64,000 bases of DNA from Octopus sinensis (taxonomy: Eukaryota), in the NCBI RefSeq assembly GCF_006345805.1, contig NC_043021.1:496001-560000 (forward strand). Direction: 5' to 3'. How positions within the stretch are numbered: position 1 is the first letter of the stretch; every line of letters begins with the position of its first letter. Below, one piece after another: positions 1 through 33,700 of this stretch. The notes below the pieces were generated by a model. That model was not told the DNA's origin, did not search any database, and saw only the letters and a list, made by a program, of their open reading frames with translations. The translations under genes were made by a program, and so were the position numbers.

Positions 1-3000
1 ACTAACACTAACAAATGGGACTGACACCAACACATGGGGCTAACACGAACACATGGGACTAACACCAACTCATGGAGCTAACAGCAAAACAGGGTCTAAA
101 ACAAACACATGGGGCTAACACCAAAACAGGGACTAACACCAAAACTGGGACTAACACCAACACATGGTCTAACACAAACACATACGGCTAACACCAAAAT
201 CGGGACTAACACCAACACATGAGGCTAACACCAAAACAGGGACTAACACCAAATCTGGGACTAACACAAACACATGGGGCTAACACCAAAACAGGGTCTA
301 ACACAAACACATGGGGCTAACACCAAAACAGGGACTAACACCAAAACTGGGACTAACACAAACACATGGGGCTAACACCAAAACAGGGACTAACACCAAA
401 ACAGGGGCTAACACCAAAACAGAGACTAACACCAAAACAGGGACTAACACCAAAACAGGGACTAACACCAACACATGGGGCTAACACCAAAACAGGGACT
501 AACACCAACACATGGGGCTAACACCAAAACAGGGGCTAACACCAAAACTGGGACTTACACCAACACATGGGGCTAACACCAAAACAGGGACTAACACCAA
601 CACATGGGGCTAATACCAAAACAGGGACTAACACCAACACATGGGGCTAACACCAACACAGGGGGCTAACACCAACACAGGGACTAACACTAACACAGGG
701 ACTAACACCAACACATGGGAGTAACACCAACATGTGGGGCTAACACCAAAACAGGGACTAACACCAACACATGGGGCTAACACCAAAACAGGGGCTAACA
801 CCAACACAGGGGGCTAACACCGACACAGGGGGCTAACACCGACACAGGGACTAACACCAAAACTGGGACTAACACCAACACATGGGGCTAACACGAACAC
901 ATGGGACTAACACCAACACATGGGGCTAACACCAAAACAGGGTCTAACACAAACCATGGGGCTAACACCAAAACAGGCACTAACACAAACACATGGGGCT
1001 AACACCAAAACAGGGTCTAACACAAACACATGGGGCTAACACCAAAACGGACTAACACCAACACGTGGGGCTAACAGCAAAACAGGGTCTAAAACAAACA
1101 TGGGGCTAACACCAAAACAGGGACTAACACCAACACATGGTCTAACACAAACACATGCGGCTAACACCAAAACAGGGACTAACACCAAATCTGGGACTAA
1201 CACAAACACATGGGGCTAACACCAAAACAGGGCCTAACACAAACACATGGGGCTAACACCAAAACAGGGACTAACACCAATACAGGGGCTAACACCAAAA
1301 CAGGAACTAACACCAAAACTGGGACTAACACCAAAACAGGGACTAACACCAAAACAGGGACTAACACCAACACATGGGGCTAACACCAAAACAGGGACTA
1401 ACACCAACACATGGGGCTAACACCAAAAACAGGGGCTAACACCAAAACTGGTACTTAAACACCAACACATGGGCTAACACCAAAACAGGACTAACACCAA
1501 CACATGGGGCTAACACCAAAACAGGGACTAACACCAACACATGGGGCTAACACCAACACAGGGGGCTAACACCAACACAGCGACTAACACCAACACAGGG
1601 ACTAACACCAACACATGGAGTAAACACCACACGTGGGGCTAACACCAAAACAGGGACTAACACAAATACATGGGGCTACACAACCAAACAGGGACTAACA
1701 CACCAAAACTGGGACTAACACCAACACATGGGGCTAACACCAAAACAGGGTCTAACATAAACATGGGGCTAACACCAAAACAGGGACAAACACAAACATG
1801 GGGCTAACACCAAAACAGGGACTAACACCAACACATGGGGCTAACACCAACACATGGAGCTAACACCAACACAGGGACTAACACCAACACATGGGGCTAA
1901 CACCAAAACAGGGTCTAACACCAAAACAGGGACTAACACCAAAACTGGGACTAACACCAACACATGGGGCTAACACCAAAACAGGGTCTAACACAAACAT
2001 GGGGCTAACACCAAAACAGGGACTAACACCAAAACTGGGACTAACACCAAAACTGGGACTAACACCAACACATGGGTCTAACACAAACACATGGGGCTAA
2101 CACAAACACATGGGGCTAACACCAAAACAGGGACTAACACCAAAACTTGGACTAACACAAACACATGGGGCTAACACCAAAACAGGGTCTAACACCAAAA
2201 CAGGGACTAACACCAACACATGGGGCTAACACCAAAACAGGGACTAACACCAACACATGGGGCTAACACCAAAACAGGGGCTAACACCAAAACTGGGACT
2301 TACACCAACACATGGGGCTAACACCAAAACAGGGACTAACACCAACACATGGGGCTAACACCAAAACAGGGACTAACACCAACACATGGGGCTAACACCA
2401 ACACAGGGGGCTAACACCAACACAGGGACTAACACCAACACATGGGAGTAACACCAACACGTGGGGCTAACACCAAAACAGGGACTAACACCAACACATT
2501 GGGCTAACACCAAAACAGGGACTAACACCAACACAGGGGGCTAACACCAACACAGGGGGCTAACACCAACACAGGGACTAACACCAAAACTGGGACTAAC
2601 ACCAACACATGGGGCTAACACCAAAACAGGGTCTAACACAAACACATGGGGCTAACACCAAAACAGGCACTAACACAAACACATGGGGCTAACACCAAAA
2701 CAGGGTCTAACACAAACACATGGGGCTAACACCAAAACTGGGACTAACACCAACACATGGGGCTAACAGCAAAACAGGGTCTAAAACAAACATGGGGCTA
2801 ACACCAAAACAGGGACTAACACCAACACGTGGTCTAACAATTACACATGCGGCTATCACCAAAATCGGGACTAACACCAACACATGAGGCTAACACCAAA
2901 ACAGGGACTAACACCAAATCTGGGACTAACACAAACACATGGGGCTAACACCAAAACAGGGCCTAACACAAACACATGGGGCTAACACCAAAACAGGGAC

Positions 3001-5010
3001 TAACACCAAAACAGGGGCTAACACCAAAACAGGGACTAACACCAAAACTGGGACTAACACCAAAACAGGGACTAACACCAAAACAGGGACTAACACCAAC
3101 ACATGGGGCTAACACCAAAACAGGGACTAACACCAACACATGGGGCTAACACCAAAACAGGGGCTAACACCAAAACTGGGACTTACACCAACACATGGGG
3201 CTAACACCAAAACAGGGACTAACACCAACACATGGGGCTAACACCAAAACAGGGACTAACACCAACACATGGGGCTAACACCAACACAGGGGGCTAACAC
3301 CAACACAGGGACTAACACCAACACAGGGACTAACACCAACACATGGGAGTAACACCAACACGTGGGGCTAACACCAAAACAGGGACTAACACCAACACAT
3401 GGGGCTAACACCAAAACAGGGTCTAACACAAATACATGGGGCTAACACCAAAACAGGGACTAACACCAAAACTGGGACTAACACCAACACATGGGGCTAA
3501 CACCAAAACAGGGTCTAACATAAACATGGGGCTAACACCAAAACAGGGACAAACACAAACATGGGGCTAACACCAAAACAGGGACTAACACCAACACATG
3601 GGGCTAACACCAACACATGGAGCTAACACCAACACAGGGACTAACACCAACACATGGGAGTAACACCAATACGTGGGGCTAACACCAAAACAGGGACTAA
3701 CACCAACACATGGGGCTAACACCAAAACAGGGTCTAACACCAAAACAGGGACTAACACCAAAACTGGGACTAACACCAACACATGGGGCTAACACCAAAA
3801 CAGGGTCTAACACAAACATGGGGCTAACACCAAAACAGGGACTAACACCAAAACTGGGACTAACACCAAAACTGGGACTAACACCAACACATGGGGCTAA
3901 CACCAAAACTGGGACTAACACCAACACATGGGACTAACACCAAAACAGGGTCTAACACAAACACATGGGGCTAACACCAAAACAGGGACTAACACCAAAA
4001 CTGGGACTAACACAAACACATGGGGCTAACACCAAAACAGGGTCTAACACCAAAACAGGGACTAACACCAAAACTGGGACTAACAACAAAACAGGGACTA
4101 ACACAAACACATGGGGCTAACACCAAAACAGGGACTAACACCAAAACAGGGACTAACACCAAAACTGGGACTAACACCAACACATGGGGCTAACACCAAA
4201 ACAGGGACTAACACCAACACATGGGGCTAACACCAAAACATGGACTAACACCAAAACAGGCACTAATACAAACACATGGGGCTGGTACCAAAACAGGGTC
4301 TAACAAACACATGGGGCTAACACCAAAACAGACTAACACCAAAACTGGGACTAACACGAACACATGGGGCTAACACGAACACATGGGACTAACACCAAAA
4401 CAGGGACTAACACCAACACATGGGGCTAACACCAAAACAGGATCTAGCACAAACACATGGGGCTAACACCAAAACAGACTAACACCAAAACTGGGACTAA
4501 CACGAACACATGGGGCTAACACGAACACATGGGACTAACACCAAAACTGGGACTAACACCAACACATGGGACTAACACCAAAACAGGGTCTAACACAAAC
4601 ACATGGGGCTAACACCAAAACAGGACTAACACCAAAACTGGGACTAGCACCAACACATGGGACTAACACCAAAACAGGGTCTAACACAAACACATGGGGC
4701 CAACACCAAAACAGGGACTAACACCAAAACTGGGACTAACACCAAAACAGGCACTAACACCAACACATGGGGCTAACACCAAAACAGGGTCTAACACAAA
4801 CACATGGGGCTAACACCAAAACAGGGACTATCACCAACATATGGGGCTAACACCAAAACAGGGTCTAACACAAACACATGGGGCTAACACCAAAACAGGG
4901 ACTAACACCAACACATGGGGCTAACACCAACACATGGGGCTAACACCAACACATAGGAATAACACCAACACATGGGGCTAACACCAACACATGGGGCTTG
5001 CACGAACATG
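1..5010. repeat. Minisatellite array of 18-19 bp monomers (CTAACACCAAAACAGGGA / CTAACACCAACACATGGGG variants) with roughly 0.83-0.9 kb higher-order periodicity
   Basis: Continuous tandem monomers; rare variants recur, e.g. GGAGTAA near 718, 1617, 2444, 3345. The array runs off the left edge of the window. Confidence 0.97.
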
Positions 5011-5779: not shown

Positions 5780-5864
5780 CTGTATAGACAGCTTGTGTAC
5801 TGGTTCAGAGATATGGTCAAAACTAGTTCGCCGGTGCTTGTCTAACTCATGGTCAATATCCTGC
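5780..5864 (-). CDS. ABCC8/ABCC9: SUR exon 22: NBD1-TMD2 linker (QDIDHELDKHRRTSFDHISEPVHKLSIQ)
   Basis: ttccag|G...CAG|gtatgt, 85 nt, phase 2-0. Confidence 0.75.
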
Positions 5865-7939
5865 CTGGAAGTTAACAAAAATACCACACAGATAAAATAT
5901 AAACTCCACATAAATAAATAATAAATGTGTTCTACTCTCTGCCAAATGTGTTTCAATGTTGGCCATACTGTCTACCAAATGTATTACATTGTCCCCTAAG
6001 TTATCTCTTTGTAGATCTAAACCCATTCAGCATTTAAACTGACCCAAATATTCTTCCTGTTTTATGATCAAACTGGCCAGATCCAGTCTCTCTAACCTAC
6101 CCTACAATGCTAGTTCTAAAAAATATACAGTAGTCACACAATTGAAATCTCAAAATTACAAGATAATGCTGGATAAATTCAAAAACGTGTGGATAAATAA
6201 ATGTTACATTTGATAGAATACTCTGAATGCCAAAGGGTTTAAAAAGGGCAGCATCTTACTTGGAGACTGTTTTAAACTTAGATCTTGAAAATACAAGGTG
6301 ACCACACTAAGCAATGATGTAGATGAATACAAACTTGCTACAAGATGAAAATATGCTTGAGGCACATTCGAATCCATAGTAAAGGTCATTCACTGAATTT
6401 TTTCATGGAGAAAATTTCTTGTCAACAGCAAGAAAATGCAGTGAAAGGCATTCTTACACGTTTGTTAAATATACCCCAAACATATTTAAACTGATAATAA
6501 GTTTAGATCTTTAATATTTCAGAGAGATTACATAGGAAATGAGTTAAAGTATATATGTGCGTGTGTGTGTGCACAAGTTTAAATTTTAGATCACCATAGA
6601 GGACAGTCACCCAAAACAATCATCGTTTGCCCTGGAACAGTTTCAGTTTAGGGTTCACACAAATGTTCTACAATAAGAGTGTCAAAGTACAACAATGATT
6701 GAGGGACAGACTCACACTGTACTTACAACACTGCAATAGTAAACTGTACGTTGAAAGGACACAACATGCAATTAAAGATCACACAAGTTTGGTATGAAAA
6801 TATTTTGAGGAAGATGGGGTGAAGGCAGAATAATTTTAAAAAATGACTGTGATAAGGAATAAGAAGAAAAGAAGAAAGAAATAGAGTAAAGTATTGTGAT
6901 TACAAAAATAACAACAACAACAGCTGAAATATTGACTAAATGATCATGTGACTACCTAATTCATTAGGCATACAGAACAAAATGGTTTGGAGAAAAACCT
7001 TTTACTCTGAGCGAGAGGCCCTTTGTTACCAGCAGAGGTAAGAGTTCTCTGAACTTTGCCCAGGCTATTCTTATTCTAGCAGCTACATTTTCAGTGCACC
7101 CTCCTCTGCTACTGACTTGGTCACCTAGCTAACGGAAGCTATCAACTACTTCTAGTTTTTCTCTCTGGGATGTGGCAGAAGTTGTTCTCTGCACTTTTTC
7201 AATGTTATTTATTGTTCCTGAGCATCTGCCACATACAAAAACTATCCTCCCAGTTAGCCTTCCTTTGATATTACTGCACCTCTTATGTGTCCATAGCTTA
7301 CACTGGGTACATCTTATAGAGTTTCTATCTACGCCTTTTCTACAGATCGAGTAGGGCCATCTACCTGAAGGGATTTGTGGTTTGTCTGCCTTCCTACTTA
7401 TTAGGACTTAGGTTTTAGTTAGGCCCTTCAATTCTAATCCTTGTTTCCACACTTGAAACTTCTCTTCGAGTTCTGATAGTGACTCAGCAATTAGAGCAAG
7501 GTCGTCAGCATAGAGGAGCTACCAGGGGCATCCTGTCTTGAATTCCTCCATTATTGCCAGGAGGATTATGATAAATAGGAGAGGGCTGAGGACTGAACTG
7601 TGGTGAACCCCTACCTCTACCCTGAATTCTTCACTGTACTCGTTGCCAACCCTCACCTTACTGACAGCATCCCTGTACATGGCTTGCACAGCTCTCACTA
7701 ACCATTCATCTATCACTAGTTTCCTCATTGACCACCAGATAAGGGATCGGGGGACCCTGTCAAAGGGTTTCTCCATGTATACAATGAGCTTCTTTCAGTT
7801 TCCGTCTACCAAATCCACTCACAAGCCTTTGGTCTGCCCAAGGCTATAGTAGAAGAAACTTGCCCAAAGTGCCATGCAGTGGGATTGAACCCAGAACCAT
7901 GTGGGCATAACTTCTGGGCAACACTGGGATGTATTGATA

Positions 7940-7981
<42 letters not shown>

Positions 7982-9588
7982 AAGTTATTTTATTTCACAC
8001 AGGTAGAAATATAGAAAAAAAAAAGCTGAAAATGCACTGGGATTCATTTAGATTTATTTGTTTAAAAATTTTTAAAGACTCAACTTCAAATATAAGTTTT
8101 TCTCTTCTTCATTCATATTTTAGAGTTTATTTCGACCATTCACCTGCTCAGTGACAATGCCGGGGAGGAGGGGGAAATAAGAGGGTCATCTTGTTGGCTT
8201 TGTTTGTCATCCATCAGACACCCATACAACTTTCAAATTTTAAGGTCTGGCACATTCTTATTGTCCCCCAATAATTTGATTGTCTCAGGTTTATGAATTA
8301 TCAACAATCGAACTTCCGCCATTCATTCCTCCAAATGTTTTGGTTATAAACCCTATCACATTAATAAATGGATAGAAGGTGGGGCTTTGGGGGGGGGGGT
8401 AGACTAAGGGATTTGCACACTCTTCGTTTATGGCTCATGTCATCTCTCTGTTGTAGTTTTCTTACTGTGTTGATGCCATGTGTGTGTGTGTGTGGAATTG
8501 AGTTGGCAGTTATTTTGTAATTAGCTATAAATATTTCCAGAGTTGTTGCTGTTGTGTTTGTTGTTAGTAAAAAACAACATTGAAGAAAGAGAGAAGAAAA
8601 GTAACAACAGCACATACAATACAATAAAAATAATAAAAACAATAAATAATAATCCTTTCTGAAATTCGGTGGGGAGTAGGTACATCAGTTACATTCACCC
8701 CAGTACTCAACTGGTACTTATTTTATCGACCCCAAAAGGATGAAAAGCAAAGTCGACCTAGGCAGAATTTGAACTCAGAACATAAAGTCAGACAAAATTC
8801 AGGGTTAAGCATTTGCCAACGTGCCAACAATGCTGCCCACTCGCCACCTTGATGATAATAATAATCCTTTCTACTATAGGCACAAGGCCTGAAATTTTGG
8901 GGGAGGGTTGATTACATTGATCCCAGTGTTTCAGACCCCAAAAGGATGAAAGGGAAAGTCAACCTCAACAGAATTTGAACTCAAAACATTAAAGTCAGAC
9001 GAAATGCCGTTAAGTATTTTGCCCAGCATGCTAACGATTCTGCCAGCTCACTGCCTTAATAATAATAATATCGAATTTTGGCAGAGAGCCAGCAGTTTTT
9101 TAGGGGCTGGAGAAGAGTTGATTATAGTGACCCCAGTATTTGACTGGTATTTATTTTATAGACTCCGAAAAGGATGAAAAGCAAACTTGACCTCATCAAA
9201 ATTTGGTTTTAGAATATAAAGATGGATGAAATGTAGCTAAGCATTTTGTTCAGCTAATGACTCTGCTAGCTCACCACCTTAATATTAATAACAACAGCAT
9301 TTGGACTTCATTTATTTGTACCCCAGTGTCACTTTCATGGCATGCAATGCTCTCTCACTCAATAATAACAACAGTGATAAGAATCTGGTCAGAAAGAACA
9401 CAAAAGTACATATATACATATATATAAGAATAAGAAAGCATTCACAGAAGTAATACCTCTCAGCCAAACTGGATCTCCTGAAATCAAAGAATCAACAGAT
9501 TAAATGTTCCCCAACAGAACTTGACCAACATTCTTCAGAATAAAGTTGCACAACAGAATAAATAAGGATATATGTATGTATGTATGCA

Positions 9589-9664
<76 letters not shown>

Positions 9665-9770
9665 AAAGAAAATAGAAACTACATGTTGCAATGTAAGGGG
9701 AAAGTAAGAAGAAAAATAAGCGAAAAATGCACATTGGAAATCAAAAGATATATATATAGCTAGATAGATA

Positions 9771-9816
<46 letters not shown>

Positions 9817-12800
9817 CACACATTTAACATATATATATATGAAAATAGTTTCATTCACTGAAAGTTCTGGCCCTCCCTGTTGTTATTGAGTCTCTTGTTA
9901 CTGTTTTGCTATTTAAAACAACTTCAAGAACCTCAGAGAAACAAGAAATCTTGAGTAGCAACAGGATGAAGTTCAAGATCCAAATAAGTTGCTAAACTTT
10001 ATGCTCACTAAATACTTTTCTCTCTTCTTTGATCACCCATACATAACAAAGTGTGTGTGTGTTGCCTCCACAACACACACACAACTCCAAGTTGTATCTT
10101 ACATGTCACTGGTATCTTCCTATGTAAAGAAGATGTCCATTTATAGCTCTTCGGCCTTTTAAAATGGTTCTTCTCAATTTTGTAAAGTAGGAACAGGGAG
10201 CACCCACTCTCTCCCATCTTCAGCCTCTCAGTGGGATATGAGAATGAATACACAGCTACTCACATTAAAAGGTACACACATACACACTCCCTACCAAACC
10301 AACTACAATAACTCTTTCCCAGGCATTAACACCCCCCCCCCACAAAAAAAAAACTTCAAAAGAGAAAAAGGAAAAAAAAAAAAACCAATGGAACAAGTTC
10401 CCCCAAGAAACAAAGACAAACTTTTCAGAATTCAATGCCACAATTAGTATCAATTATGACTGTGCATAAATTTACCAAAATAATTATAGCTGCAGCTAAA
10501 AATATATTCATTAAGGCAATACAAGACATACAACTCTGATTACAAAACTGAAACTGTCAAACTGATAATGAGTAGAGACAACCTCAGGCACTAAAACCAG
10601 AAACAAAAGAAATAAAAGCAAATGAATAAATATAAAAAACAAATAATAATGAAAATTGATTAATGTTTGTATCCAACATAAATTAGAAAAAAAAGAGTAA
10701 CAAACATCATCATCATCCTCAACAATCACACAATAACATCTTGGAATCAGATTGAAACAGGAAGGAAACACGATTATCAGACATCAACATTATCCTTTTA
10801 TATATCTATTTTTTATGCTGGCATGGGATGAACGGACCACCGTGATCCAAAGCAATTGTTATTTGGAGCTGGTGTCCATCTAGAAAGGCCAGAAGATCAA
10901 GGGTTGTACATATCATACATCTGTTTGCCTTTCCTACCACCAACCACTCTACAGAATGTATTGAGTGCATTTTATTGTGGCACCAACACTAGAGAGGTTG
11001 CTGTCTCTTCAGCATGTCTAAACAATCTTCTCTGCACTATGTTTATCTTTGTTCATTTACTAACCACTTTACAAGAGTGTACAGGGTTGACATTGTTTGA
11101 AAATCAGCCAAAACAACACAATGAAAACAGAAACATAAAACAAACAAAAAATGCACCATCCCTGTACACACACACACACACACACGCACAAATCACCTGC
11201 TGAAAAACAAAATTGCTCTACATAATTCATATGAAAATAACTTGAAAGAAAGAAATATTTTTATCTCTACTGAATAATAACCAATAAAAAATATTGGTTG
11301 GTTGGTTGAATTCTCTAGTCGTACTTATAGTGTATAAAGAGCAGAAGAATGAGTGTAAAAAAAGAGATACAGAGAGATTTAACACAAGTACAGGATGACT
11401 GCACATACTAGGCTTGGTAACAGACAATGAGTAAAGGAATGTCTCGCATGCACACACACAATGACAAAGAATCATAGAAAGAGGAAGAGGAGAGGGAGAA
11501 AATAACAAAGTAACAAATATTTTTCTTTTCAAAATTAATATTCATGTCCTCATTTTGTATAAACACCAAGAAATTTGATAAAAATTAATTATTGTATGTA
11601 TGTCATATTTCCTGATGTTACCCACGGTAGCAAAAGTATAGTTCCAAAGTTACCAATCATATGAAGCAGGCAACACTCTAGTTTTGCTGTTTTATGAAAG
11701 AGAGATCAATAGATTAATCAAAATGTGATTTCATTAGTTTCTAAAATATCAATGTGAAAATTGAAACTTCAATGAATCAACAAAAGAAGGAAATGACACA
11801 AAATCTTTGAAATATTTGTATTGACTAATGAGTAAAGGATGACTATGACAAAAGAGTGAATATTGAAGATAATAGATGCTTTGGGTGAGGTATAAGAGTG
11901 ATATATGAGAGTGGACACCTCAACAAAGAGTTACAACCCCAGGTCATTTCAGTTTTACAGTTTATATCATACTAAACCTAAGTAGACAAAAGCATGCCCT
12001 ACTGCCCCTCGGGTCACCCAATACATGCACTGGGCAGTCCAGAGTATTGAGCAGCATTTATAACAAAAAATGCAAGACAGATGTAAAACCTAGTGACTTA
12101 GATATACTCAGATTGTGAGAGAGAGAGAGAGATGTGAATAGCAGAGAGAGACTGGTTCATGAGAGAGAGAGAGAAAGAAATGTGAATACTAGAGAGACTG
12201 GTTGGTATGTGAGAGAGAAAGAATGAGTGTAACAGAACATACTAATAATGACCAAAATTCCAGAAAAGATAATACAAACAGGAAACAAAAAAATACCTTT
12301 CTGGAAGACTTGATCTCCTCCTGGGGCAACAAAATAAAAACAACAGCTTCATTACTGATATTTAACATGTTGGAACATGCTATTTAGGGTGATTAGAACA
12401 AATTATAGCTACATGTGACATGTTGTAATAGACTCTTAATAGGTTTTGCTGAAGTTTTTCATTATTCCTTTGACTTGCAACGTGTTCAGGCTGGACACAT
12501 CAATCGCATCAGTGTAGGAAGACCTTCAAAGTCATAGCTGAGTATGACAGATCATAACATACATTGAGAGGTCATAGCAAGCCATAAGATGTATTGACAA
12601 GGCATAGAAGACCATGACAGATCACCGGAAGTCATTGCGAACTAAAGAGATGTTGACAGGTCATAGGACACAATGAGAAGGGATAGCAGGTCATCAGAGG
12701 TGATGACAGGCCATAGCAGACTATGGCAGATCATAAAAGATAAAACTGACCCGGAAATAGAAGGTACTCCTCATTTGATTTATATGTTGCAAAACCGTAG

Positions 12801-14808
12801 ACATAGAGAGAACATTTCACAACATGACATATAAGAGTACATCAGTACCCAATATACAGAGAGTACCTAAAAAAGGATCATGAGCCATAAGCTCATAAGG
12901 CCAGTTTCCCAGAATCTGTGGTGTATACACACACCCTGGATGGGACTCCAGCCCACTTTAGGATTACTCACTTTTGCCAAATGAGGGGACTGGAACAACA
13001 TGAAATGAAATGTTTTTGCTCACCCAGTCCAGGAATTGAAACCACAATATTATAATCATGAGTGCAACACCCTAACCAATAAGCCATGCACCACCACAGA
13101 GTGTACCCGAGTACATGATACAGAAAGCACTTCGATAGATAAAGAGAGTATTCCACTACAACAAAGATAATACCTCACTACAAAAGAGGCAGAACCTTAC
13201 AAAAATATAGAGTTCTTCATTACACAACACATAAAGTACCTTACAAAATTGACTACAAGATATAGGGTACGTCACTACAAGACATACAGGCAACACTACA
13301 CTACATGGTACAGAGTACCTCAAGACAGACAGTATAGTACCTCATCGCAAGATATAGAGTACCATGCCAAAAAAAAAACCTGATGGTAGTTCATTATAAG
13401 GCATGCAGTACCACATAATAAAGCATACAAAGTACCTTATTATGAAATTTAGAGTACCACAAGGAAGACACGACTTTATTACAAGACAAATGGTACCATG
13501 CTGTAAGACAGTCATGCAGTACTGCACAAGACAGGGGACAAACTACTCTTGCTACTACTAATAACACTACTGACCAATACTTATTGATACTTTTGAAAGA
13601 ATATCAATATGTATTGAGTACTTCACTACTAGATCTTGTTCTGAAATATATATAAAAACCAAGCTGTGTCACACACACAAACACACAGAGTATTTTGCAA
13701 CATCCAGCTCACACACACACACACAGTACTCTACAGATACTGATAACATTTTACTACATCACACACACTCACAGTATACAGCTGCATGACAAGGACATGA
13801 CCACATGACATCAATATATATAAAAATCTATCAAAAATACCTTTCAACCACATTAGTTCTTCTGGAAATAAAATTGATATAATAATGAAAGTTAGAAGAT
13901 AAAGTAAAACTGATTAATTATTATAATTTATGTGTTCTTGACAATGATGATGATGTTGATAATTATTTAGGATTTAGGTACAAGGCCATCAATTACAAAG
14001 GGTGGGATGGTCAATTCCATCAACCCCACTAACTTACTTTAAGACCAGCAAATTTATGAAGGGATTAAGCAATTATATCAACCCCAATTCTTCACTAAAA
14101 CTTTAATGATCCCAAAAGAATGAAAGACAAAATCAAACTCAGTGGAATTTGAACTTACAATATACAGAACCAGAACAAATAGGCAAAACATTTCTCCAGA
14201 CTCTCTACTGTTTCTGCCAATCTTCTACCATAATTGTTTTCAATAATGGCACAAGGTTTGGAAAATAGGGATAGGAACCGAGTAAAATATCTATCAAGTA
14301 CTGGGGGTCAATTAAATTTGAATCCCAGGACTTGACTGGTATAACTTATTTTGTCAACCCTGAAAGGATGTGTGGTAAAGTTGACCTCAGTGGAATTTGA
14401 ACTCAGAATGTTAAAAGTGCTGGAACAGTAGTTTCTTTTTCTCGCAGTCTAACAATGCTGCCACTCCACTACTGACACTGACCCCCAGTTCACAACTCGT
14501 ACCTTATTTCATTGCCTGCAGAAAGATGGAAGACAAGGCAGACTTTGGCAGGATTCGAGCTCAGAACATAAAATGTCGGATTAAATGCTGCCAAGCATTT
14601 TACCTGTTGTACTAACAATTCTACCAGCTCACCACAACACCAATAATAATAATAATCCTTTCTACTAAAGGCACAAGGTGTAACTGGTACTTATTTCATC
14701 AACCCCAAAAGGGTAAAAGGCAAAGTCAACCTCAGTGGAATCTGAACTCAACGTAAAGATTGACAAAATACCGATAAGCATTTTGCCTGGCGTGCTAACA
14801 ATTCTGCC

Positions 14809-14852
<44 letters not shown>

Positions 14853-16654
14853 GGCCATGCATTTTCTGGGGTGAAGTTTATTGACTCAAACTTTATATTA
14901 ACAACTCCAGTAAAAGGTAAAGTTCACCCCAACTGGATTTGAACTCTGAACAGACACAGGAGTGGCTGTGTAACTTAGGCACAGGAGTGGCTGTGTGGTA
15001 ATAAATTTGTTTACCAACCACATGGTTCCTGCGTGGTACCTAGGGCAAGTGTCATCTACTATAGTCTTGGGCCGACCAAAGCCATGTGAGTGGATTTGAT
15101 AGGCAGAAACTGAAAGAAGCTCGTCTATATGTATGTATTTGTGTGTCTGTGCTTGTTTGCCCACCATTGCCTGACAGCCAATGTTGGTGTGTTTACATTC
15201 CCAAACTTAGTGGTTCAGCAAAATAAACCGATAGAATAAGTACCAGGCTTACAAAGAATAAGTCCTGGGGCGATTTGCTCGACTAAAGGCGGTGCTCCAG
15301 CATGGATGCAGTCAAATGACTGAAACAAGTAAAAGAATATATACATTATTTAGACAACATAAATACCAGAAAATATTTGTCCAATACTCTACAGATTTCT
15401 GGCAGCCCTCTCAACGAGTTCAAATATAGAGAGAAGGCCAGGAAGTTGGGGAGAGGGCTAGCATTTACTTTATATACCCTGAACAAATATTAAGGATGTG
15501 GATCGCATAATTAATATAATGGCTATAAATGGGATTAGTGAATGTCAAAGTAGGAGACACTATAAACTTTACAAACTGAGAGAGTAAGTGGATCATCTCT
15601 AAGTAAGGGAGACTACTCGGTATTGATGAAGGGAGGTAACTTGGTCTAACAACAAAATAGCAATTTGAACAGACGTAAGCGATCTCTGTGTGACAGGGGC
15701 AGCTAATGTCGGCTAAGTATACGGGGAACGAAGGAGGGTTAACACTATGAATATTCGCGGGTTACAATGACGTCAAGAGACTTGTAATATGTGGGAGAGG
15801 GTTAACATTTTGTGGGTTAATACTTCATTCAAGGATTATATGGTTTGACCAACTCCCCCATTTATGTGAAGTTAAAACACTCAATGATTTCATGGGTTAA
15901 CAGCCCACATTTAATTAATGTAGGCTAATACTGCATTCAAGAGTTAACCCCCAACTCCAATCAATTATATGGGTTAATATTACATTCAATGGCTAAATGG
16001 GTTAAACCACCATCACCCCCTTTCATTTAAGTGTATTAACAGCATTCAATTACCACATGGGTTAACCTCACATCATTTATCTGGGTTAACACGACGTTCA
16101 ATTATTTTAGCTTCTACAACAATAAAATAGGTTAATATCAAACAGGTAATGGTTGTTACAATACAAAAAAATCAAGTGGGATAACATAAAATGTAGGCAT
16201 GGCAAGAATAATATAACCCAGATGTGAAGTGTAAAGGGGCTAACACTTACTTGTTATCCTTCAGTACTCTTCTCCAGCTTTCATAAAGGTCAGGGTCAGC
16301 ACGCTTTATGTCTTTCAATCTTCCCTGACATTTGATTTGGTGACGATTCACAACAATTATCTGCAGAGAAACAAAACACGTATTACTATTGTGTGGGAGG
16401 AGGGGGGACATGCATGTGTAGAAATTACTATCGTGTGTAAATGTGTGTGTGTTCTTTTACTTTCAGCTATTTGACTGTGGCCATGCTGGAGCACCGCCTT
16501 GAAGGGTTTTAGTCGAACAAAATGACCCCAGAACTTATTTTTCAAAGCCTAGTAACTTATTCCATCAGTTACTTTTGCTGAACCACTAAGTAATGAGGAT
16601 GTAAACACACCAACACTGATTGTCAAGCGGTGGTAATAGGGGACAAACACACAC

Positions 16655-17281: not shown

Positions 17282-20200
17282 AGTCACAAATTACAGAAAT
17301 ATTTAGATGAAATTATATATAAAAGTTAAAAAATTCTAATTTTACGGCAAATTGTTTCATAACTGAAAAACGTAAATAATTTATATTATCATATTTAATA
17401 TTTAATGATAAATAAATAAGTTACACCCAAACAAATACACACACACACACACATTTATGCAACATGGTAACATCAACAACAATAATGTAAAACAATGTCT
17501 GTGAAAGGAACTGACCTGATAAGCATTGTAGATGTGAGGAATTTGTGGAGAGACAAGGATAACTGTACGTTTTCTTCTGATCATGCTGCGTACCACTGCC
17601 TCCTCAAAAACATTGCGTCCAAGGTGATGCTCTATCTTGGAGAATGGATCATCCTGGGAACAGAACACGTTTAAATATGTTTTAAAGTTCAAATCTTGTT
17701 TGAAGCAGCTTTTCTTTATTTCCACCCTTGGGGAAAATGAAACTGTGACCTCGGCCTACAATGTGTTTTTTTTTTTATATCCATGACCCTTTTTAGAACT
17801 TTCATGACCAGTTGGATTGGGGAGGAGACAAGGAGAGGGTTTAACCTTCAGACCAGACATTTTGTTAGAATGCTTACAACAAAGTAGACACCTGTAAAGA
17901 ACAGCCAAGGACCAGGTGCTGGTGTTAAACTTGCAAATGGATCGATGATGATGATGATGATGTGAGTTGTTAAGTTCAACTCAATCTTTAACCCCCTAAA
18001 ATAGAAATGTAGCAGCCAGTAAATGGATAACTGGAAGAGTCCATGTAAAGAAGGTGGGTAGATTATGCTTACCATAATAATTGTGTTTGCTGAGGAATAG
18101 AGAGCTCTCGCAAGAGAGATACGCTGTTTCTGACCTTCTGTCAGTAAGATACCCTGAAAATAAAGACAAAATAAAAAGTAATAATTAAAAAGGTGATGTT
18201 GTTTGGTTGGTTGAGCCAGTTCCCACTTCTCACTTGCATCATCTTTATCTTTTAATAATATTTTTTAAAAATCAAGATTTAGCTTCTCAGAACTGCAATT
18301 AAATGAACAACAAAACAATTCCTAGAGATTTTTTTTTTCTACTCTAGGTACAAAGCCTGAAATTTTGGGGGAAGGGGCCAGTCGATTGGATCGACCCCAG
18401 TATGCAACTGATACTTAATTTATCGACTCGGAAGGGATGAAAGGCAAATTCAACCTCGGCAAATTTCATAGAGAATATTGCTACAAACGTGAGCAACACT
18501 GAATCGGAAGATCTAGTCTTCAGGGAAGCAACAGAAATAAATAAATGATGATGATGATGTTGGTGGTAGTAGTAATAATATTTGTTTCAAATTTAAGCCA
18601 GTAATTTTGAGGGGAGGGGATGTTAATCAAGACCATTGTCCCGCGTACTTGACCGGTACTTTATCAAGTCCAAAAGGATGAAAGACAAAGTTGACTGATA
18701 GGATTTGATCTCAGAACACAAAGTGCCCACAACAAATGCCACAAAACATTTTCCCCAACACTCTAATGATTCTGCCAGCTTGCCACCTTTGGCCACCAAT
18801 TTTTGAGGGGATGTAATTCAAAATATAAACAACTAGCAGTATCGCCCGGCGTTGCTCGGGTTTGTAAGGGAAATAATTATATAAGCATTTTTAGAGATGT
18901 AAAGTATAATAGCCATCTCAATATGGCTAACCACAAAGGGGGAGGGGTGTTACTGTAGCTTTTTACGTTCTGAGATTTAATAATAAATTTTAGAGAGTTA
19001 CTTCCCTTATATATGTCAAAAATGGATTAAAAATGGGAAAAATTGATGGTAAATTTTTTTTTAAATCGTAGACTCATCGTAGACGCGCGCTAATACCCAG
19101 ACAGTCTCGATATGAATCACGACTATAAGATACCCGGTTTTGGTTAAACTGCACCGCAAAATGTGGGAGTAGTTAGGAATCTAAATCGTAGGAGACAGAC
19201 ACACAACCTCACTTTTATATATAAAGATTTCCTCTATTTACATAATATTGAGGTCTCTTTCTTTCTTTTGTTATCTTACTGTTTTTACCAATATACATAT
19301 ATATATATATATATAAATATATATATAGTTACAGAGATGTACTTGCATAGCAAGTGACTTGATCTGAGATCGTGTGCTGGAACGAAAACAGTTGCAGCGT
19401 TGAAGGTGTTTATAAGCCATTTAAGAAACACACAAAAACCGTTAGATTCACTTCAACATTTAAATTTAATTTGTGAAAATATTTTCGTCGCTTTGAGACC
19501 GCGACCTGTTAGCACGATATTTTTGTCAGTGAACAGGTCGCGGTCTGAAAGCGACGAAAATATTTTGGCAAATTAAATTTAAATGTTGAAGTGAATGTAA
19601 CGGTTTTTGTGTGTTTCTTAAATGGCTTACAAACACCTTCCACGCTGCAATATATATATACACACATATATATATATGTATGTATGTATGTATGTGTGTA
19701 TATGTGTATGCATGTATGTGTGTGTGTGTGCGTGTCTGTGCTTGTGATTGTCCTCCACCACTGCTTGACAACGAATGTTGGTTTGTTTACATCCCTGTCA
19801 CCTAGTGGTTTGACAAAGGAAACAGATAGAATAAGTACAATGCTTACAAAAATAAAACTGGAGTTGATTCATTAAACTACAATTCTTCAAGGCATTGCCC
19901 CAGCATGGCCACAGACCAATGGCTGGAAAAAGCAGAAGAATAAAAGAATACATTCTCTGCTTTGGTCATATGTTGAAGGCATGAGAAAGCTTGAGTTTAC
20001 ATGAGAAGGCCTAACAGACCTGGTAGAAACAGCAGCCAAATCTCCCTCAAATCACACCTTACTGTCTTATGTATGTATATATATATGAGCCAATGAGGGG
20101 GACCTCTACATGGTAGCTAGACCTGGTAGAAATAGCAGCCAAATTTTCCCCAAATCACACCTTACTGTCTTATCTATGTATATATGTATGTATGAGCCTA

Positions 20201-26200: not shown

Positions 26201-28387
26201 AATTTTGCAATAATATAAAATATGAGGGAGAAACTAAGATGCAGTTACAGGTAAAGAGAGTAGAGATGCTAAAAGAACTTACCCAGAGGGATTTTAATGT
26301 TGATATCTTTTAAACAGGAAGATTCATCAGAGAGGTCTGTAGAGAAAGAAGCGTCAGTGATGTCAAGGGCAAGTCGGTGTTCTAAGGTCGGAGCAGCTTC
26401 TGCTGTTTCTCCCTCATCTTCCGTGATGGAGAGGTTGCCATTGGTATTCCGTCGACGATAATGAAACCCTCGTCTTTCAGCGATGTAGGTGTCGTTTTCA
26501 GAAGTGATTGAGTGCTGTGAAAAGCTTGGCCGACGAAAGGCAGGGTCGAGGATGTCCAACACAGATGCCCCGCTGTTCTGCCGGCTGTGGTTTGGAGTGT
26601 GACCCAAGGGGGGACTACTCTCCACTGATGAGATACTTCCACGCATCGCTCCATTGTGGAACGCCATACTAAGCTGGTTGGTTTTTACATCATACTTCAT
26701 CAGAGTGTCCAGCTTGTTCTAACAACAACAACAACATCAGTAAGAGTGACATCAGACACACACACACACACACACACCACAAACAAGAAAGTGAAGGAGA
26801 CAAAACATGAGGTCTCAAAACGTTTATAAAGAGTAGAAGCAAGAGGAGATATTTTAATTGAAGGTGTATAGAGGATAGCAATAAAAGGAGATGAATTAGT
26901 TGAGGTTGAACAGAGTAGCAGTAGGAGGATATGTAACAGCTGAGGGTGTACAAAGAGTAGCAGTAAGAGGAAATATAACAGTTGAGGGTGTACAAAGAGT
27001 AGCAGTAAGAGGAAACATGACAACTGAAGGTGTACAGAAAGTAGAAATAAGAGATGTAGCAGTAGGAGGAGATGTAACAGTTGAAGGTGTAGAGAGAGTA
27101 GCAGAAAGAGAGATGTAACAGTTGAAGGTGTACAAAAAGTAGCAGTAGGAGATGTAACAGTTGAAGGTGTAGAGAGAGTAGCAGTAAGAGGAGATCTGTC
27201 TGGAAGAGTGGCAGTGATGCTTTCCCAAACTTACTAACATGGGTGGAATTGGTTTTGAAAATTCAGACATTTCTACATCACTGGATCTTGAGTCCATCAC
27301 CAGCGGAGTAAGAGTGGAACCTGTTGTCAGCCATGTGGACTAATTTGGTTTACAGAGGAGAAAATATTTGTAGCCTCCTACACTACCAACTCCTGCAAAA
27401 TAATGTACCATGCAGCCCACCTACATCATAGGACCATAGTGTACCATGTGGTCCACATACAACAGGATAGTGTACCATGAGGTCCACATACAATATGATA
27501 CCACATGGTCTACATACAATAGGACATACAAAGAGGTGCTGAAAAGCTCCTGGCTTTAAGGGCATCGTGAAAGGCCTGGTTAAATGCCCAATCTTCCGAC
27601 TTCTTTTACAGGGCTTAGAAAACCTAAAGGACCGCTGCAATAAGTATGAGAATCTGAGAGGGGAATACGCTGAATAAAATCATAATTAACTGATCCGCCT
27701 GCGTTTTCTTTTACCCAATAGATACAACAGAATGTACTGCATGATGTGGTTGAACTATTATAGAACATACTGTACCATGTGAACCATCATCACAGCACAG
27801 TACACCATGTGATCCATTTTACTATAGGACATTGGGTACCATATCCTCCTTATAAAACAGAAGATTGAGTAAACAGAAAACTAAACATATTTCACATCAG
27901 CAGTCAGGGAAGCACGAGTGTGTAAACCAGACAGGCAGCAGGATTATAACAGCATGAAACTATTGGTAGCTCTTTCGATTGTGTATTTAAATTCATATTT
28001 ATCTCTCACTGGATGGAGTGCTTTTTTTTCTTGACTTTACCTCTATTAGATCTGTAAACTATATGTGTGTGTGGAGGCGCAATGGTCCAGTGGTTAGGGC
28101 AGCTGACTTGCAGTCGTAGGATCATGGTTTCGATTCCCAGACCGGGCATTGTGAGTGTTTATTGAGTGAAAATACCTAAAGCTCCACGAGGCTTCGGCAG
28201 GGGATGGTGGCGAGCCCTGCTGTACTCTTTCACTATAACTTTCTCTCACTCTTTCTTCTGTTGGCCTGCTCGCTTAGCCAGCAGGGTGGCGTCATTTGAA
28301 GGCTAAAACAATGCGAAGCGCATTGTGACCAGCGATGTGTAACAACATCTGATAACCTCGTCGGTCACGGTGAGATATATATATATA

Positions 28388-28418
<31 letters not shown>

Positions 28419-29686
28419 TCACTGTAAGGAAAAGTCGTGTGTGTGTATGTATATATATATATATACATCATCACAGTATTGAGAAGGTCATGTGTGTATG
28501 TGTATAGAATGTGGGGTGTATATACTGTTGTAGGAGGGAAGGGACCACATGGCCAGATGAGACGGGGAACTTAATCCCATCTGATGACTCATTAATCCTA
28601 TCTGCCATTGAAGTGTTAAGGCAATAAATCAGATGTGCAGAAACAAAGCAACAGAGTGCAGTGTATGGTGCATCATTGTGCACATCTCACCTTACAATCA
28701 ATACAGCAGAACATGGACTTGGCTGACTGGACAACTGATCGCAATCGAGACATGGAGAAGGACAACTGAAAGACAAGTTGTTACAACAATGATGATGACT
28801 AGAGTGGTAGTGATGACAATGATGATGATGATGGTGTTATAGCAATGACATTGATGTTAGTGATGGTGATGGTGTTACAGTGGTAAAGATGATTATAGTG
28901 ATGGTGATGGTGTTACAGTGGTAAAGATGATTATAGTGATGGTGATGATGTGATGGAAATGGTATTTTGTGGAACTGACACTGACTGCTTCAGTGGTATG
29001 ATGACGGTGACGGTGATGGTGTATCGTGTAATATGTGACTGGTAATTCAAAAGAGAAACGGTAAAAGCAAAAATTACCTCTGCATCTTTCTGTACATTGC
29101 TTGTCTGGTGGCACTTGGTGAAGAAGGCACTGGGGTGTTGGCATATTTGGCTGGATTGTAAGAAGGATGTCAACTCTCGGCTGCTGCTCTTTGCATTTAG
29201 TAAAGATATGTAAATAACACAGAGGAAGTAAAAAGGATAACACATCACTTGGAAGGTGGCAGCAACAGAAAATACTTGGCCGGGAGTCAGCACTGTTTCC
29301 TTTGAAATATGGTAGTAGAGAAAGGTCTAAAAAAAGAAATAGGATTGAAACGTTAGAAGAGAATTCATAGAGAATGAACTAGTCATCATCACCACCATCA
29401 TTTGACATCTGTTTTCCATGCTGGCATGGGTTGGACAGTTTAACCAGTGCTGGCAAGCCAGAAGACAGTACCAAGCCCTATTGTCTGTTTTGGTGTGGTT
29501 TCTATGCCTGGTTGCCCTTCCTAATGCCAACCGCTTTCAGAGTGGACTGGGTGCTTCTTGTGTGGCACCAGCACTGATGGGGTTACCGAGTAACTTGCAT
29601 GAAAAACATTCCTCAACTGAGAGAGAGAGAGTGATATTGAGGGAGGTGGATTTATGCGATGTGATGAGAGAACACACATATTTATA

Positions 29687-30720: not shown

Positions 30721-33700
30721 CAGTAACTGCCGAAAACGGTCATGACTTCTGGGACTTGACTGAGGAAAGAAGGCCACAAATGACCTGTCTTTCAAATTGT
30801 TGTTTCTCTTGTCCACCTTGTATCGTCTTTCTGTCTGAATGTTTTATTGTACTCTATTGCGTTTTTGTTCCATTTATATATATATATATATATATATCTA
30901 ATAATAGACCTAACTGACTACAATTTTAACCCCTACACTTGGTGCTCCTTCATTTTTATCAAAATTTATAAACATTGGACATTGATATCTTATGGATGCA
31001 GTGGTGTTCATCCATTACCACCAGCCCCCTTACAAACCATTGTTCTCTAAGTTCAGAGATAATTATTGTTTTGTTTTTTTTGTCTTTTGTGAAATTATTC
31101 AATGTAAAAAAAACAGTGTTTTATCATTGTGTTTAGTTTTTCTTTGGTTATTCATGATGGACATCATCAGTTACATCAATGACACCAGTTTGGAACTGCA
31201 AAAGAATTCATTTACATTGTAGGGAGGGATAAGAGAGAAAGAGTGTATAAACTGACCAACAATTGAATTGGAGTAGAATACACACACAAGTCTATCTCTA
31301 TAGATTTTCTAAAGTTCAGAGCCGACACTGAAAGTTACAACATTTCATATAAGAAAACATGAATGCAAAGAATGCAATGAAAGACAGAAACAAATAGGTG
31401 ATATTTCAAGAGTTATTGCTTTTTCATCAGCCCTACATCAAACCCATTAACTATCCATGAACACATTGCTTAAATACCCACCAAGTTTTGTGTTTAATAT
31501 ATAAACTGGATAAACCAGTTTACATATTAAACACATTCCTGGTAACTGGTATGCAAAAGTAAAATACCCACCTTCGGTCGTGAATGACCATGGGATTGCA
31601 CCTGGAAAGTTCCCTTCCAAAGCACAACTTTGGGCAAGGTTGCAAATGGGAAACCAGCAATCGCCCATGCATACCAGCCTCCCCCTCTCCATGCCACCCA
31701 TGTTATCCAAGAGAAAGACAAAGGTCGATACAGCTTGGCACCAGTGACGTCGCAACTCATTTCTACAGATGAGTGATCCAGAGCAAAGTGAAATAAAATG
31801 TCTTGCTCAAGAACACAACACACAGCCTAGTCTGAGAATTGAACTCACTACCTTATGATTGTGGGCCCGACACTCACCATTGAGCAATGCATCATGGTAC
31901 ATACACATAAATCTACCTCGCATTTTATATATACGATCTGTAGTCAAAAAGTATCTGACCTTGATTTTTTTTTGGCACAAAATATTAATGCGTGAGCAAA
32001 ATCCGCATGGGTATGAGGTAACCATGTCTTTCCTGAGCATGTGCAAAAATTTCCGTGTCTGTAGGTTGCACATTTCACCTGCAGTGATGTGTTGAATAGA
32101 AACATGAAGAGTGTGCAATTTTTCTTTGAGTCAAGATGACCGAGTGCATTGAGCAAAGATACTGCATCAAATTCTGCCAAAAACTTGGTGATACGCAAGC
32201 CCAGACTATCAAGAAGATTCAGAAGGCCTTTGGAGATGATGCTATGGGAAAAACACAAATAAAGGAGTGGTACAACCGGTTCAAAGATGGCTGCACCTTA
32301 GTGGACAGTGAGCCATGTTGTGGCCGGACAATTAACAAAGAATACTACCTGGGGGTTCTTTGTCGCATTCATGAAGCTGTGTGGCAAAAACGACCTGACC
32401 TGTGGGCAGCAAAGAACTGGAAACTCTATGAGAATGCACCTACTCATTCCACCTACGTCATCCAAGCATTCCTCGTCATGCAAAACACACCACTTGTTCG
32501 TCAGGCTTCCTACTCCCCAGACTTGACTTCATGTAACTTTTGCCTATTCCCAAAGCTCAAAAAAAAAAAAAAACCACTCAAAGAGAGATTTGAGTCAACA
32601 GAAGACATTAAGCAAAATTCAACGGCACACCTCTACAACATCCCAAAAAGTGATTTCCAGGAATGTTTCCAGCAGTGGCAGGAATGCTGACAAAAGTGTG
32701 TAAACACCCAAGATGAATACTTTGAAGGAGACTAAATTAAAATGGTGAGTTTTTTAATATTATTTGTTTTTTGGCCAAAGGCCAAACACTTTTAGACAAA
32801 ACTTTGTGTGTATATATATATATATACATACATACATACACACAAAAGAGAGAGAAAGTGTGTGTGAGCGTGAAAGTGTACAAACTGACCGATGATAGAC
32901 TTGAGGTAGGCAATACGATACAACAATTTCATCTCCTTCTTTCGGTCCTTACAGACCAAACGGCTGAAACATTTCTCCCAGGCATTTAACTTGATCTGCT
33001 TGATGCCTTTTATTAGTTGTTTTACTTTCTTCACCCTCCTTTCACTGAGATTCTGAAAAAGAGAAAGAATGAGGCAGTAAGAGAGAGAGAGAGAGAGCGA
33101 AGTGGGGTATAATGGGTATAACAGAGTAAAGTGGTAGAGTCACACAGACAATCTAATGAAGTGGTTCTCAACCGCTGTATGTATAAGATTTTGGGGGGTC
33201 CATGCAAAAAATAGTAAATCGGGGATCCACAATAGTCTTTTATGGGTCCCTGAAAAAGTTTTGCTTTAGATGTTTGTATTGGTGTGTATTGCAAGAAACA
33301 GCGAGGTTTCTTTCTCTGACATTTTCCATTATTCAACCGACACAAGTTCATGAGTGAAAAACAAAATAGGAATTTGAAAGAAGTTTCTATAAAACTAGTT
33401 TTTGAACATGGAACGATTGTGGGGGTCCACCAGAAAAGAATAGCAATCAAAGGGATCCATAGATAAAAAATGGTTGAGAACCCCTGCTCTAATGGGATAA
33501 TGACATATATAGGAGAGAAAGCCAGGGCAGAAGAGTTGAACAATGACATATAGATGAGAGTAGAGTAGTTTGGTGTGACAATGGTATTTAGGCTGTACGG
33601 TGATAAATAACAAGTGGGGAGTGCAGTTGAGGAATATCAGCCAGCACCCATCCAACATACCATTATGCTGCCTTGGAGTCTAAACAGGTGCCGTGCAGTG

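Follow-up and report, generated by a model that had tools for sequence, protein, structure and literature searches.

Three alternatively used microexons at the start of the NBD1-TMD2 linker in the predicted octopus SUR (ABCC8/9) orthologue, two of them carrying kinase-type motifs

The stretch of Octopus sinensis DNA analysed here, 64,000 nucleotides (nt) of contig NC_043021.1 and hereafter the window, carries on its minus strand a gene that, by sequence similarity, is the Octopus sinensis SUR (ABCC8/9) orthologue. One intron of this gene contains three microexons, A, B and C, which are coding, under purifying selection and used in alternative combinations; they are inserted at the start of the linker between NBD1 and TMD2 (the N1-T2 linker), and B and C carry R-R-x-S-hydrophobic motifs. 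We regard it as nearly certain that A, B and C are coding and are spliced as described, and consider it highly probable that the joint best explanation of the results is one of three independent, conserved cassette microexons together with a putatively phospho-regulated N1-T2 linker; a putative phospho-regulatory role of the microexon cluster is plausible. As a sequence feature the microexons are not a discovery, in that all three are already present in public RefSeq/ENA gene models, and cassette-microexon clusters and kinase-site-bearing ABCC linkers are both known categories. The public models of the locus are automated annotations, named only 'ABCC9-like'. No discussion of the octopus SUR microexons or their motifs was found in the literature searched, and the main text, supplements aside, of a comparative splicing preprint that includes O. 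bimaculoides mentions neither ABCC nor SUR.

The gene assignment is based on phmmer searches of the PDB, using as query a partial spliced translation comprising TMD0, L0, TMD1, NBD1 and the start of the linker. Solved structures of SUR2B were matched at E = 1.1e-147 and of SUR1 at ~1e-143, as against ~3e-71 for MRP1 and ~1e-61 for CFTR. The SUR-specific TMD0 aligned throughout, with exon 1 and the next exons matching SUR2B residues 3-333 at 199 bits, and a TMD0-L0 module with SUR-specific similarity precedes the ABC core of the octopus protein. TMD1 and NBD1 are encoded in the window, and the full-length models mapping there contain two PF00664 and two PF00005 domains. The window showed 0 mismatches to chromosome CM016883.1 of the O. 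sinensis assembly GCA_006345805.1 across the 57,034 nt compared, and the RefSeq protein XP_036369025.1 (O. sinensis X1) could be placed exactly on it as 22 coding exons, numbers 19, 20 and 21 of which are A, B and C. This exact placement is the decisive point, because it identifies B and C as RefSeq coding exons.

The microexons lie in the 10,386-nt intron between coding exons 18 and 22. Coding exon 18 (16251-16360, minus strand), which an earlier reading of the window from its letters alone (the sequence-only reading) had numbered exon 19, is the last NBD1 exon and corresponds to residues 1053-1089 of XP_036369025.1; it encodes ...YESWRRVLKDN + AA/gtaagt (slashes mark exon-intron boundaries), exits in phase 2, and ends in ...GATAACAA/gtaagt at 16251 (longer stretch CTGAAGGATAACAA/gtaagt). 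Coding exon 22 (5780-5864, minus strand, from the exact X1 mapping) begins ttccag/GCAGGATATT at 5864 (longer stretch ttccag/GCAGGATATTGAC) and encodes QDIDHELDKHRRTSFDHISEPVHKLSIQ, its initial G completing a Lys or Arg junction codon. The NBD1 alignment stops at ...YESWRRVLKD, facing SUR2B residue ~912, and the SUR2B N1-T2 linker, which is disordered and carries the autoinhibitory ED domain, comprises residues 911-976 (PMC8694068); the microexons are therefore inserted at the very first linker residues, in agreement with the location in the NBD1-TMD2 linker of a receptor that had been proposed without database searches. An acidic ED-like tract, EDDGLEEDD...DNEEEE, is present in the octopus protein ~50 residues downstream of the insertion site.

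All three microexons have canonical AG/GT sites and pyrimidine tracts, are no longer than 27 nt, are phase 2-2 and lie on the minus strand. Microexon A (13841-13861; 21 nt; tatttccag/AAGAACTAATGTGGTTGAAAG/gtattttt) encodes RTNVVE, B (12297-12320; 24 nt; ttgccccag/GAGGAGATCAAGTCTTCCAGAAAG/gtattttt) encodes RRSSLPE and C (9457-9477; 21 nt; gatttcag/GAGATCCAGTTTGGCTGAGAG/gtattact) encodes RSSLAE, in each case followed by a junction Arg, whose codon is formed by the terminal AG of the microexon and the G or A that opens the following exon. As exon 18 ends in AA, Lys precedes whichever exon is included first, and a direct 18-22 junction likewise gives Lys. Since all three are phase 2-2, each can be included or skipped independently of the others without a change of frame, adding 7 (A), 8 (B) or 7 (C) residues at the start of the linker. 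The sequence-only reading had described B and C as a pair of tiny exons, each adding an RRSS site. Their splice sites, phase and positions are borne out by the single occurrence of each sequence in the window and by the exact X1 mapping, but the intron holds three microexons, A (13861-13841, RTNVVE) having been missed. Similarly, B is self-contained as an R-R-x-S-L motif, with both arginines of RRSSL encoded within it, but C alone provides only RSSLAE and takes its first basic residue from the junction codon, so that the motif is KRSSL when C follows exon 18 directly and RRSSL when it follows A or B. B has a tandem acceptor, CAG/GAG (12318-12322, minus strand); splicing at the second AG would yield a 21-nt exon encoding RSSLPE, parallel to C, but is seen in no annotated isoform.

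The annotated gene models reveal that the eight possible ways of including or skipping A, B and C are all represented among Octopus species, the models compared being XP_036369025.1 to XP_036369034.1 (X1-X10) of O. sinensis, XP_014770068.1, XP_014770071.1 and XP_014770072.1 of O. bimaculoides, and CAI9740487, CAI9740488 and CAI9740490 of O. vulgaris. None of the three is included in O. bimaculoides X3, O. vulgaris CAI9740490 and the Argonauta model; A alone is present in O. vulgaris CAI9740487, B alone in O. sinensis X5 and O. bimaculoides X2, and C alone in O. sinensis X7. The combination A+B is annotated in O. sinensis X2, A+C in O. sinensis X4 and O. vulgaris CAI9740488, B+C in O. sinensis X3, and all three microexons together in O. 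sinensis X1, X8 and X10 and O. bimaculoides X1. The linker of isoform X3 reads exactly DNKRRSSLPERRSSLAERQDI, which is the product with three R-R-x-S motifs that had been predicted for splicing of B and C between the flanking exons (18-B-C-22 peptide DNK-RRSSLPE-R-RSSLAE-R-QDIDHELDKHRRTSF, with QDI...HRRTSF at its end). Across the annotated models alternative use of the microexons changes the number of candidate motifs per isoform from 1 to 2 or 3, within ~45 residues, so the proposal that splicing sets the number of candidate sites stands.

An exhaustive search with the exon-1 translation, and its follow-up, identified as full-length relatives an Argonauta hians ABCC9-like protein, a cluster of 21 Octopus proteins and two clusters from Logan run assemblies, which share 86% identity with each other and ~70% with octopus SUR; one of the latter is cuttlefish-like, because it includes a fragment from Acanthosepion (Sepia) pharaonis. 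Intronless Logan contigs of 5.5-7.5 kb from three runs carry, across the two lineages, none of the microexons, A, C, A+C, or A with another microexon. At the junction, the SRR25158139 contig reads ESK-KNVVPE-R-RCSLAE-R-KENE and the SRR27666080 contig EYK-KTAAPE-R-RSSLAE-R-KENE, i.e. both are of the A+C type, and the SRR8281677 contig reads ESK-KENE, with none; further members of the Logan clusters have A alone, C alone, or A with a microexon IQTWLK. In one protein of the cuttlefish-like cluster (P0186) A is followed by a 7-residue IQTWLK-R where octopods carry B, and, judging by this protein sequence, the cuttlefish-like lineage seems to possess an additional microexon of its own in the same intron.

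Comparison between species provides the evidence for constraint. The genome of O. bimaculoides is identical to that of O. sinensis at 66/66 nt of A+B+C, within an intron that is 82-89% identical around the microexons (~94% in the block around C); the chance of full identity over 66 nt is roughly 4e-4. The orthologous intron of Argonauta hians (on the sequence here called L001) is 10.7 kb long, and its colinear blastn islands comprise only the flanking exons on either side and microexons A and B, each together with its flanks. All three Argonauta microexons keep their length, AG/GT sites and frame. Argonauta A (L001 31293-31313; GCGAACCAATCTTGTGGAAAG) encodes RTNLVE and is conserved together with flanking intron, and Argonauta B (L001 34217-34240; GAGGAGATGCAGTCTACCAGAAAG) encodes RRCSLPE and lies inside an island of ~150 nt that is ~68% identical. 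Argonauta C (L001 37530-37550; ACGCTCCAGCTTGGTTGACAG), which was located by motif, encodes RSSLVD, and has 16 identical nt before its acceptor and a conserved TTCTGNGAATGC downstream. Between Octopus and Argonauta C differs at 6 nt, with 4 of the differences being synonymous (including an Arg change from AGA to CGC), and R-S-S-L is intact. In the two distant lineages the orthologues of A are KNVVPE and KTAAPE and those of C are RCSLAE and RSSLAE (run assemblies); because both A and C occur there, they predate the split of the octopods from these lineages. B has so far been found in octopods only. Conservation of B and C in other cephalopods, which had been named as a check on the sequence-only reading, thus takes the form of identity in O. 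bimaculoides, conservation with splice sites in Argonauta, and presence of C, not of B, in the distant lineages.

The same reading had proposed a duplicated origin for B and C, and this is plausible, with 14-16/21 nt shared between the two, versus 15-18/21 nt shared between C orthologues of different lineages. The B/C value holds in most comparisons, falling to 10 with Argonauta C. Over the 21 aligned nt, Octopus B differs from C at 6 positions, 5 of these differences being synonymous, and the internal gAG/GAGATC of B aligns with the acceptor cAG/GAGATC of C. From these alignments the most likely history is that C was duplicated in the octopod lineage to give B; after the duplication, the acceptor of B would have shifted 3 nt upstream, building in the extra Arg. 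A shares its frame, length and ...GAAAG/gtatttt donor with B, and only 11-14/21 nt with B or C; one common origin for all three microexons is possible. An origin of the B/C likeness in a shared interspersed repeat was considered and rejected, as the flanks of B and C do not align and the repeat families of the intron lie elsewhere.

The octopus N1-T2 linker, between NBD1 and TMD2, contains multiple kinase consensus sites. The R-R-x-S-hydrophobic pattern occurs as RRSSL in B, as [K/R]RSSL in C and, constitutively, as RRTSF in exon 22 (5833-5819, minus strand), 18 residues into that exon. This pattern is the optimal consensus of PKA/PKG-type basophilic kinases. The PKA sites reported for SUR2B and SUR1 lie elsewhere, near the start of NBD1 and in NBD2. 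Across species the consensus appears as RRCSL in Argonauta B, RSSL in Argonauta C, and RRCSL and RRSSL in the distant lineages, and the exon 22 motif is RRTSF in octopods including Argonauta and RRTSL in the two distant lineages. Among the copies of B and C the two basic residues, the second Ser and the next Leu are invariant, and the first Ser (S/C) and the tail (PE, AE, VD) vary; the R-R-x-S-hydrophobic kinase consensus predicts exactly this constraint, with its invariant second Ser and Leu. A, with RTNVVE-R, has no conserved phosphosite and would be a spacer or charge element. The predicted tryptic peptides spanning the candidate sites are SSLPER, SSLAER and TSFDHISEPVHK.

A further R-R-x-S-hydrophobic motif, FRRPSF, is encoded at 26521-26535 (minus strand) in exon 12 (26283-26718), within a long Ser-rich insertion before NBD1; its counterparts are FRRPSM in Argonauta and FRK[HPT]SM in the two distant lineages. 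With FRRPSF conserved before NBD1, the kinase-type consensus is not confined to the N1-T2 linker. The second Ser codons of B and C (12306-12308 and 9466-9468, minus strand, and those of the L001-L003 orthologues) are always AGT/AGC and never TCN. It would be pure speculation to propose that A-to-I editing of such an AGY codon, in coleoids, would recode Ser to Gly and so abolish the candidate site.

In mechanistic terms, the second Ser of the B and C motifs would be a candidate for phosphorylation by PKA, PKG or a related kinase; to phosphorylation of the microexon serines in vivo we give about even chances. The insert would be net basic (+1 to +2) when unphosphorylated and net acidic when phosphorylated, and such a charge switch might alter the contacts of the linker with the NBDs and with the Kir6 partner, and hence channel activation by Mg-nucleotides. 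Splicing would then set how strongly kinase signalling shifts the linker equilibrium. This putative linker mechanism is modelled, by analogy, on the R regions of CFTR and Ycf1 and on the SUR2 ED domain. In CFTR and Ycf1 the NBD1-TMD2 linker is a phospho-regulated R region that is released from an inhibitory position by phosphorylation, and the SUR2B ED domain is a mobile autoinhibitory element between the NBDs and Kir6 (PMC8694068; 10.64898/2026.09.28.753909).

The CFTR (ABCC7) R domain and the yeast Ycf1p R region share with the octopus insert its position, in the disordered NBD1-TMD2 linker, and the presence of several R-R/K-x-S sites. The likeness is one of position and site type, with no sequence homology claimed, and the octopus sites are predicted. 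The CFTR R domain is, however, a long constitutive segment and not a set of cassette microexons, whereas the octopus linker has only 1-3 candidate sites, their number being set by splicing; furthermore, the octopus protein is a predicted SUR orthologue with a TMD0, not a channel or transporter of the CFTR or Ycf1 type. Vertebrate SUR2 (ABCC9) belongs to the orthologous family and has the same linker, and the octopus acidic tract resembles its autoinhibitory ED domain, but in the SUR sequences compared here from turtle, amphioxus, oyster and snail the linker follows ...W[KR]x(4-7) directly.

No part of SUR is less well understood than the NBD1-TMD2 linker; recent structural work has described it as an autoinhibitory disordered regulator, with phosphorylation of the SUR1 linker stated to be an open question (10.64898/2026.09.28.753909). 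The octopus gene provides a natural isoform series that should be easy to express and compare, its members being distinguished at the start of the linker by 7-22 residues and 0-2 kinase-type motifs alone. If the phospho-regulatory reading is true, the series would be a natural experiment on the occurrence of phospho-regulation in SUR N1-T2 linkers, and this would be the first ABCC linker with phospho-regulation dosed by microexon splicing. We also raise, tentatively and as an idea we judge unlikely, the possibility of a coleoid 'mini R domain', i.e. a splice-programmable cluster of three paralogues, conserved since before the octopod split, that, in the regulatory subunit of the K-ATP channel, sets how many cAMP/cGMP-kinase sites are present (1-3) as well as the length and charge of the stretch ahead of the autoinhibitory acidic tract. 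Were such dosing to occur, the gain with which K-ATP (ATP-sensitive potassium) channels respond to kinase signalling would differ between tissues. With its three neighbouring, probably duplicated microexons that occur in every combination, the locus is, in addition, useful for studying the evolution of microexon recognition beyond vertebrates and insects.

Several points weigh against the combination of independent cassette microexons with phospho-regulation. Motifs of the R-R-x-S type are common in disordered basic segments. Transcript-level support for B consists of RefSeq annotations of two species only, and B is missing from the listed run assemblies and from the models of O. vulgaris and Argonauta; the annotated Argonauta protein omits A, B and C altogether. 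Some of the RefSeq (Gnomon) combinations may have been joined from separate junction supports rather than from full-length reads. The donor of C (GAG/gtatta) is weak and the acidic tail of C is variable (AE, VD). Finally, there is no microexon-sized insert at this junction in snail, oyster, amphioxus or turtle SUR, the alternative inserts of snail and amphioxus lying further along the linker; this makes the feature lineage-specific, and none of the SURs studied so far offers a functional precedent for it.

One alternative accepts the microexons as real and conserved, but has them act as spacers of length or charge, or as a docking motif (14-3-3-like, or a basic patch facing the acidic ED-like tract), with the R-R-x-S pattern being a by-product of a basic, Ser-rich disordered segment. 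Such a role is possible, although we think it improbable. It would account for A, which has no conserved Ser/Thr in any of its forms (RTNVVE, RTNLVE, KNVVPE, KTAAPE), yet is conserved and alternatively used, and for the extra microexon IQTWLK of a distant lineage, which has no phosphosite motif; each microexon also adds net positive charge just upstream of the acidic tract. The pattern of constraint argues the other way, in that the most constrained positions of B and C are those of the kinase consensus, i.e. the two basic residues, the second Ser and the Leu at +1, and the same consensus recurs constitutively in exon 22 (RRTSF/L) and once more before NBD1 (FRRPSF, 26535-26521).

Another alternative concerns regulation rather than function, and was part of the sequence-only reading, namely that the microexons are neural and controlled by an SRRM3/4-type eMIC factor via UGC, such that neurons carry more candidate phosphosites than other tissues. 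The microexons resemble those of the SRRM3/4 (eMIC) neural/endocrine programme, which are 3-27 nt long, frame-preserving and deeply conserved, with conserved flanking intron; the 21-24 nt length, symmetric phase, deep conservation and conserved intronic flanks of the octopus microexons are typical of that programme. The UGC that had been noted in the ttgccccag of B is indeed present, at 12326-12328 (minus strand), i.e. at -8 to -6 relative to the acceptor, and has a counterpart at -6 to -4 in Argonauta B; UGC occurs between the branch point and AG in ~75-79% of SRRM3/4-dependent microexons, and is not strictly required (10.1101/2024.09.17.613571). This triplet is a candidate SRRM-type enhancer only. 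A single UGC in 15-20 nt is expected by chance about 1 time in 4-5. There is, moreover, no UGC within 20 nt of the A or C acceptor in either Octopus or Argonauta, and three adjacent combinatorial microexons are less usual than a single switch-like exon. The Rbfox-type GCAUG 112 nt downstream of C in Octopus is absent in Argonauta and, because it is not conserved, is not claimed as an element. We treat neural switching by an eMIC factor as doubtful, and hold a tissue-specific dosage role for the microexons to be a similarly uncertain proposal.

Two other observations bear on splicing at the locus. Repeats of the CAUGUGG type are located 25-90 nt downstream of A, at 13782-13817 (minus strand) in the window and at ~31335-31410 (plus strand) of the Argonauta L001 sequence; Octopus has two to three copies (ucaugugg ucauguc ucaugcag) and Argonauta three, ACAUGUGGCAU (acauguggcau). 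These repeats are the clearest candidate for an intronic splicing element at the locus. Elsewhere in the gene, between TMD1 and NBD1, coding exon 11 is a 75-nt cassette exon (28691-28765, minus strand; ctttcag/.../gtgagat) encoding LSFSMSRLRSVVQSAKSMFCCIDCK, which most isoforms of O. sinensis and O. bimaculoides include, and which O. sinensis X10, the O. vulgaris and Argonauta models and the run assemblies lack.

The reading of the microexons as conserved coding cassettes was also set against chance. Within the intron, 299 AG..GT candidates of 3-30 nt are open in phase 2, and [RK][RK]x[ST] is found among them only at the B and C loci. Ranked by joint splice-site score, using a small weight matrix derived from 14-15 of the gene's own confident splice sites, A is 1st, B 3rd and C 14th of the 299. 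Of 1000 dinucleotide-preserving shuffles, 0.7% produced a pair of candidates matching at 7/8 residues; the real intron has other similar candidate pairs, but these are copies of an interspersed repeat, and B and C are part of no repeat. A scan of all six frames of the 64-kb window with the motif set [RK][RK]SS[LIVM], RSSL.E and R[RK][ST]S[LF] matched only B, C and exon 22. A chance origin of B and C is rejected by the shuffles, the six-frame motif scan and the cross-species conservation. That the microexons are chance AG...GT matches, annotation artefacts or splicing noise between gene models, with no biological role, is extremely improbable: the number of open candidates, the poor donor score of C and the lack of all three in the Argonauta model and in one model each of O. 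vulgaris and O. bimaculoides speak for it, but it is refuted, as far as evidence from sequence goes, by the 100% identity of A, B and C in two Octopus species within an intron that is ~86% identical, the conserved splice sites and open frame of all three in Argonauta, the occurrence of A and C in run assemblies made independently and de novo for the two more distant cephalopod lineages, and the bias of substitutions towards synonymous ones.

Among features outside the linker, the NBD1 motifs of the octopus protein seem degenerate (18130-18144 and 17543-17557, minus strand). LTEGQ replaces the LSGGQ signature, and the H-loop position reads LVSPQ versus LVTHK in SUR2B; the run-assembly proteins have VTSQ/VTTQ here, and VTHH is kept in the snail.

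The introns around exon 22 are rich in repeats. A minisatellite of ~5 kb (window 1-4998), with an 18-nt unit, ACTAACACCAAAACAGGG, in ~272 copies and with 37- and 55-nt periods as well, occupies the intron downstream of exon 22 up to the edge of the window. The intron between C and exon 22 contains a degenerate retroelement fragment (7132-7794, minus strand), with a weak match to RVT_1 (E = 0.004, below the Pfam cutoff) and a match to a PHD-finger (E = 1.6e-5). Copies of a repeat resembling a short interspersed nuclear element (SINE) adjoin this fragment at 8709-9250 and recur at 14089-14950.

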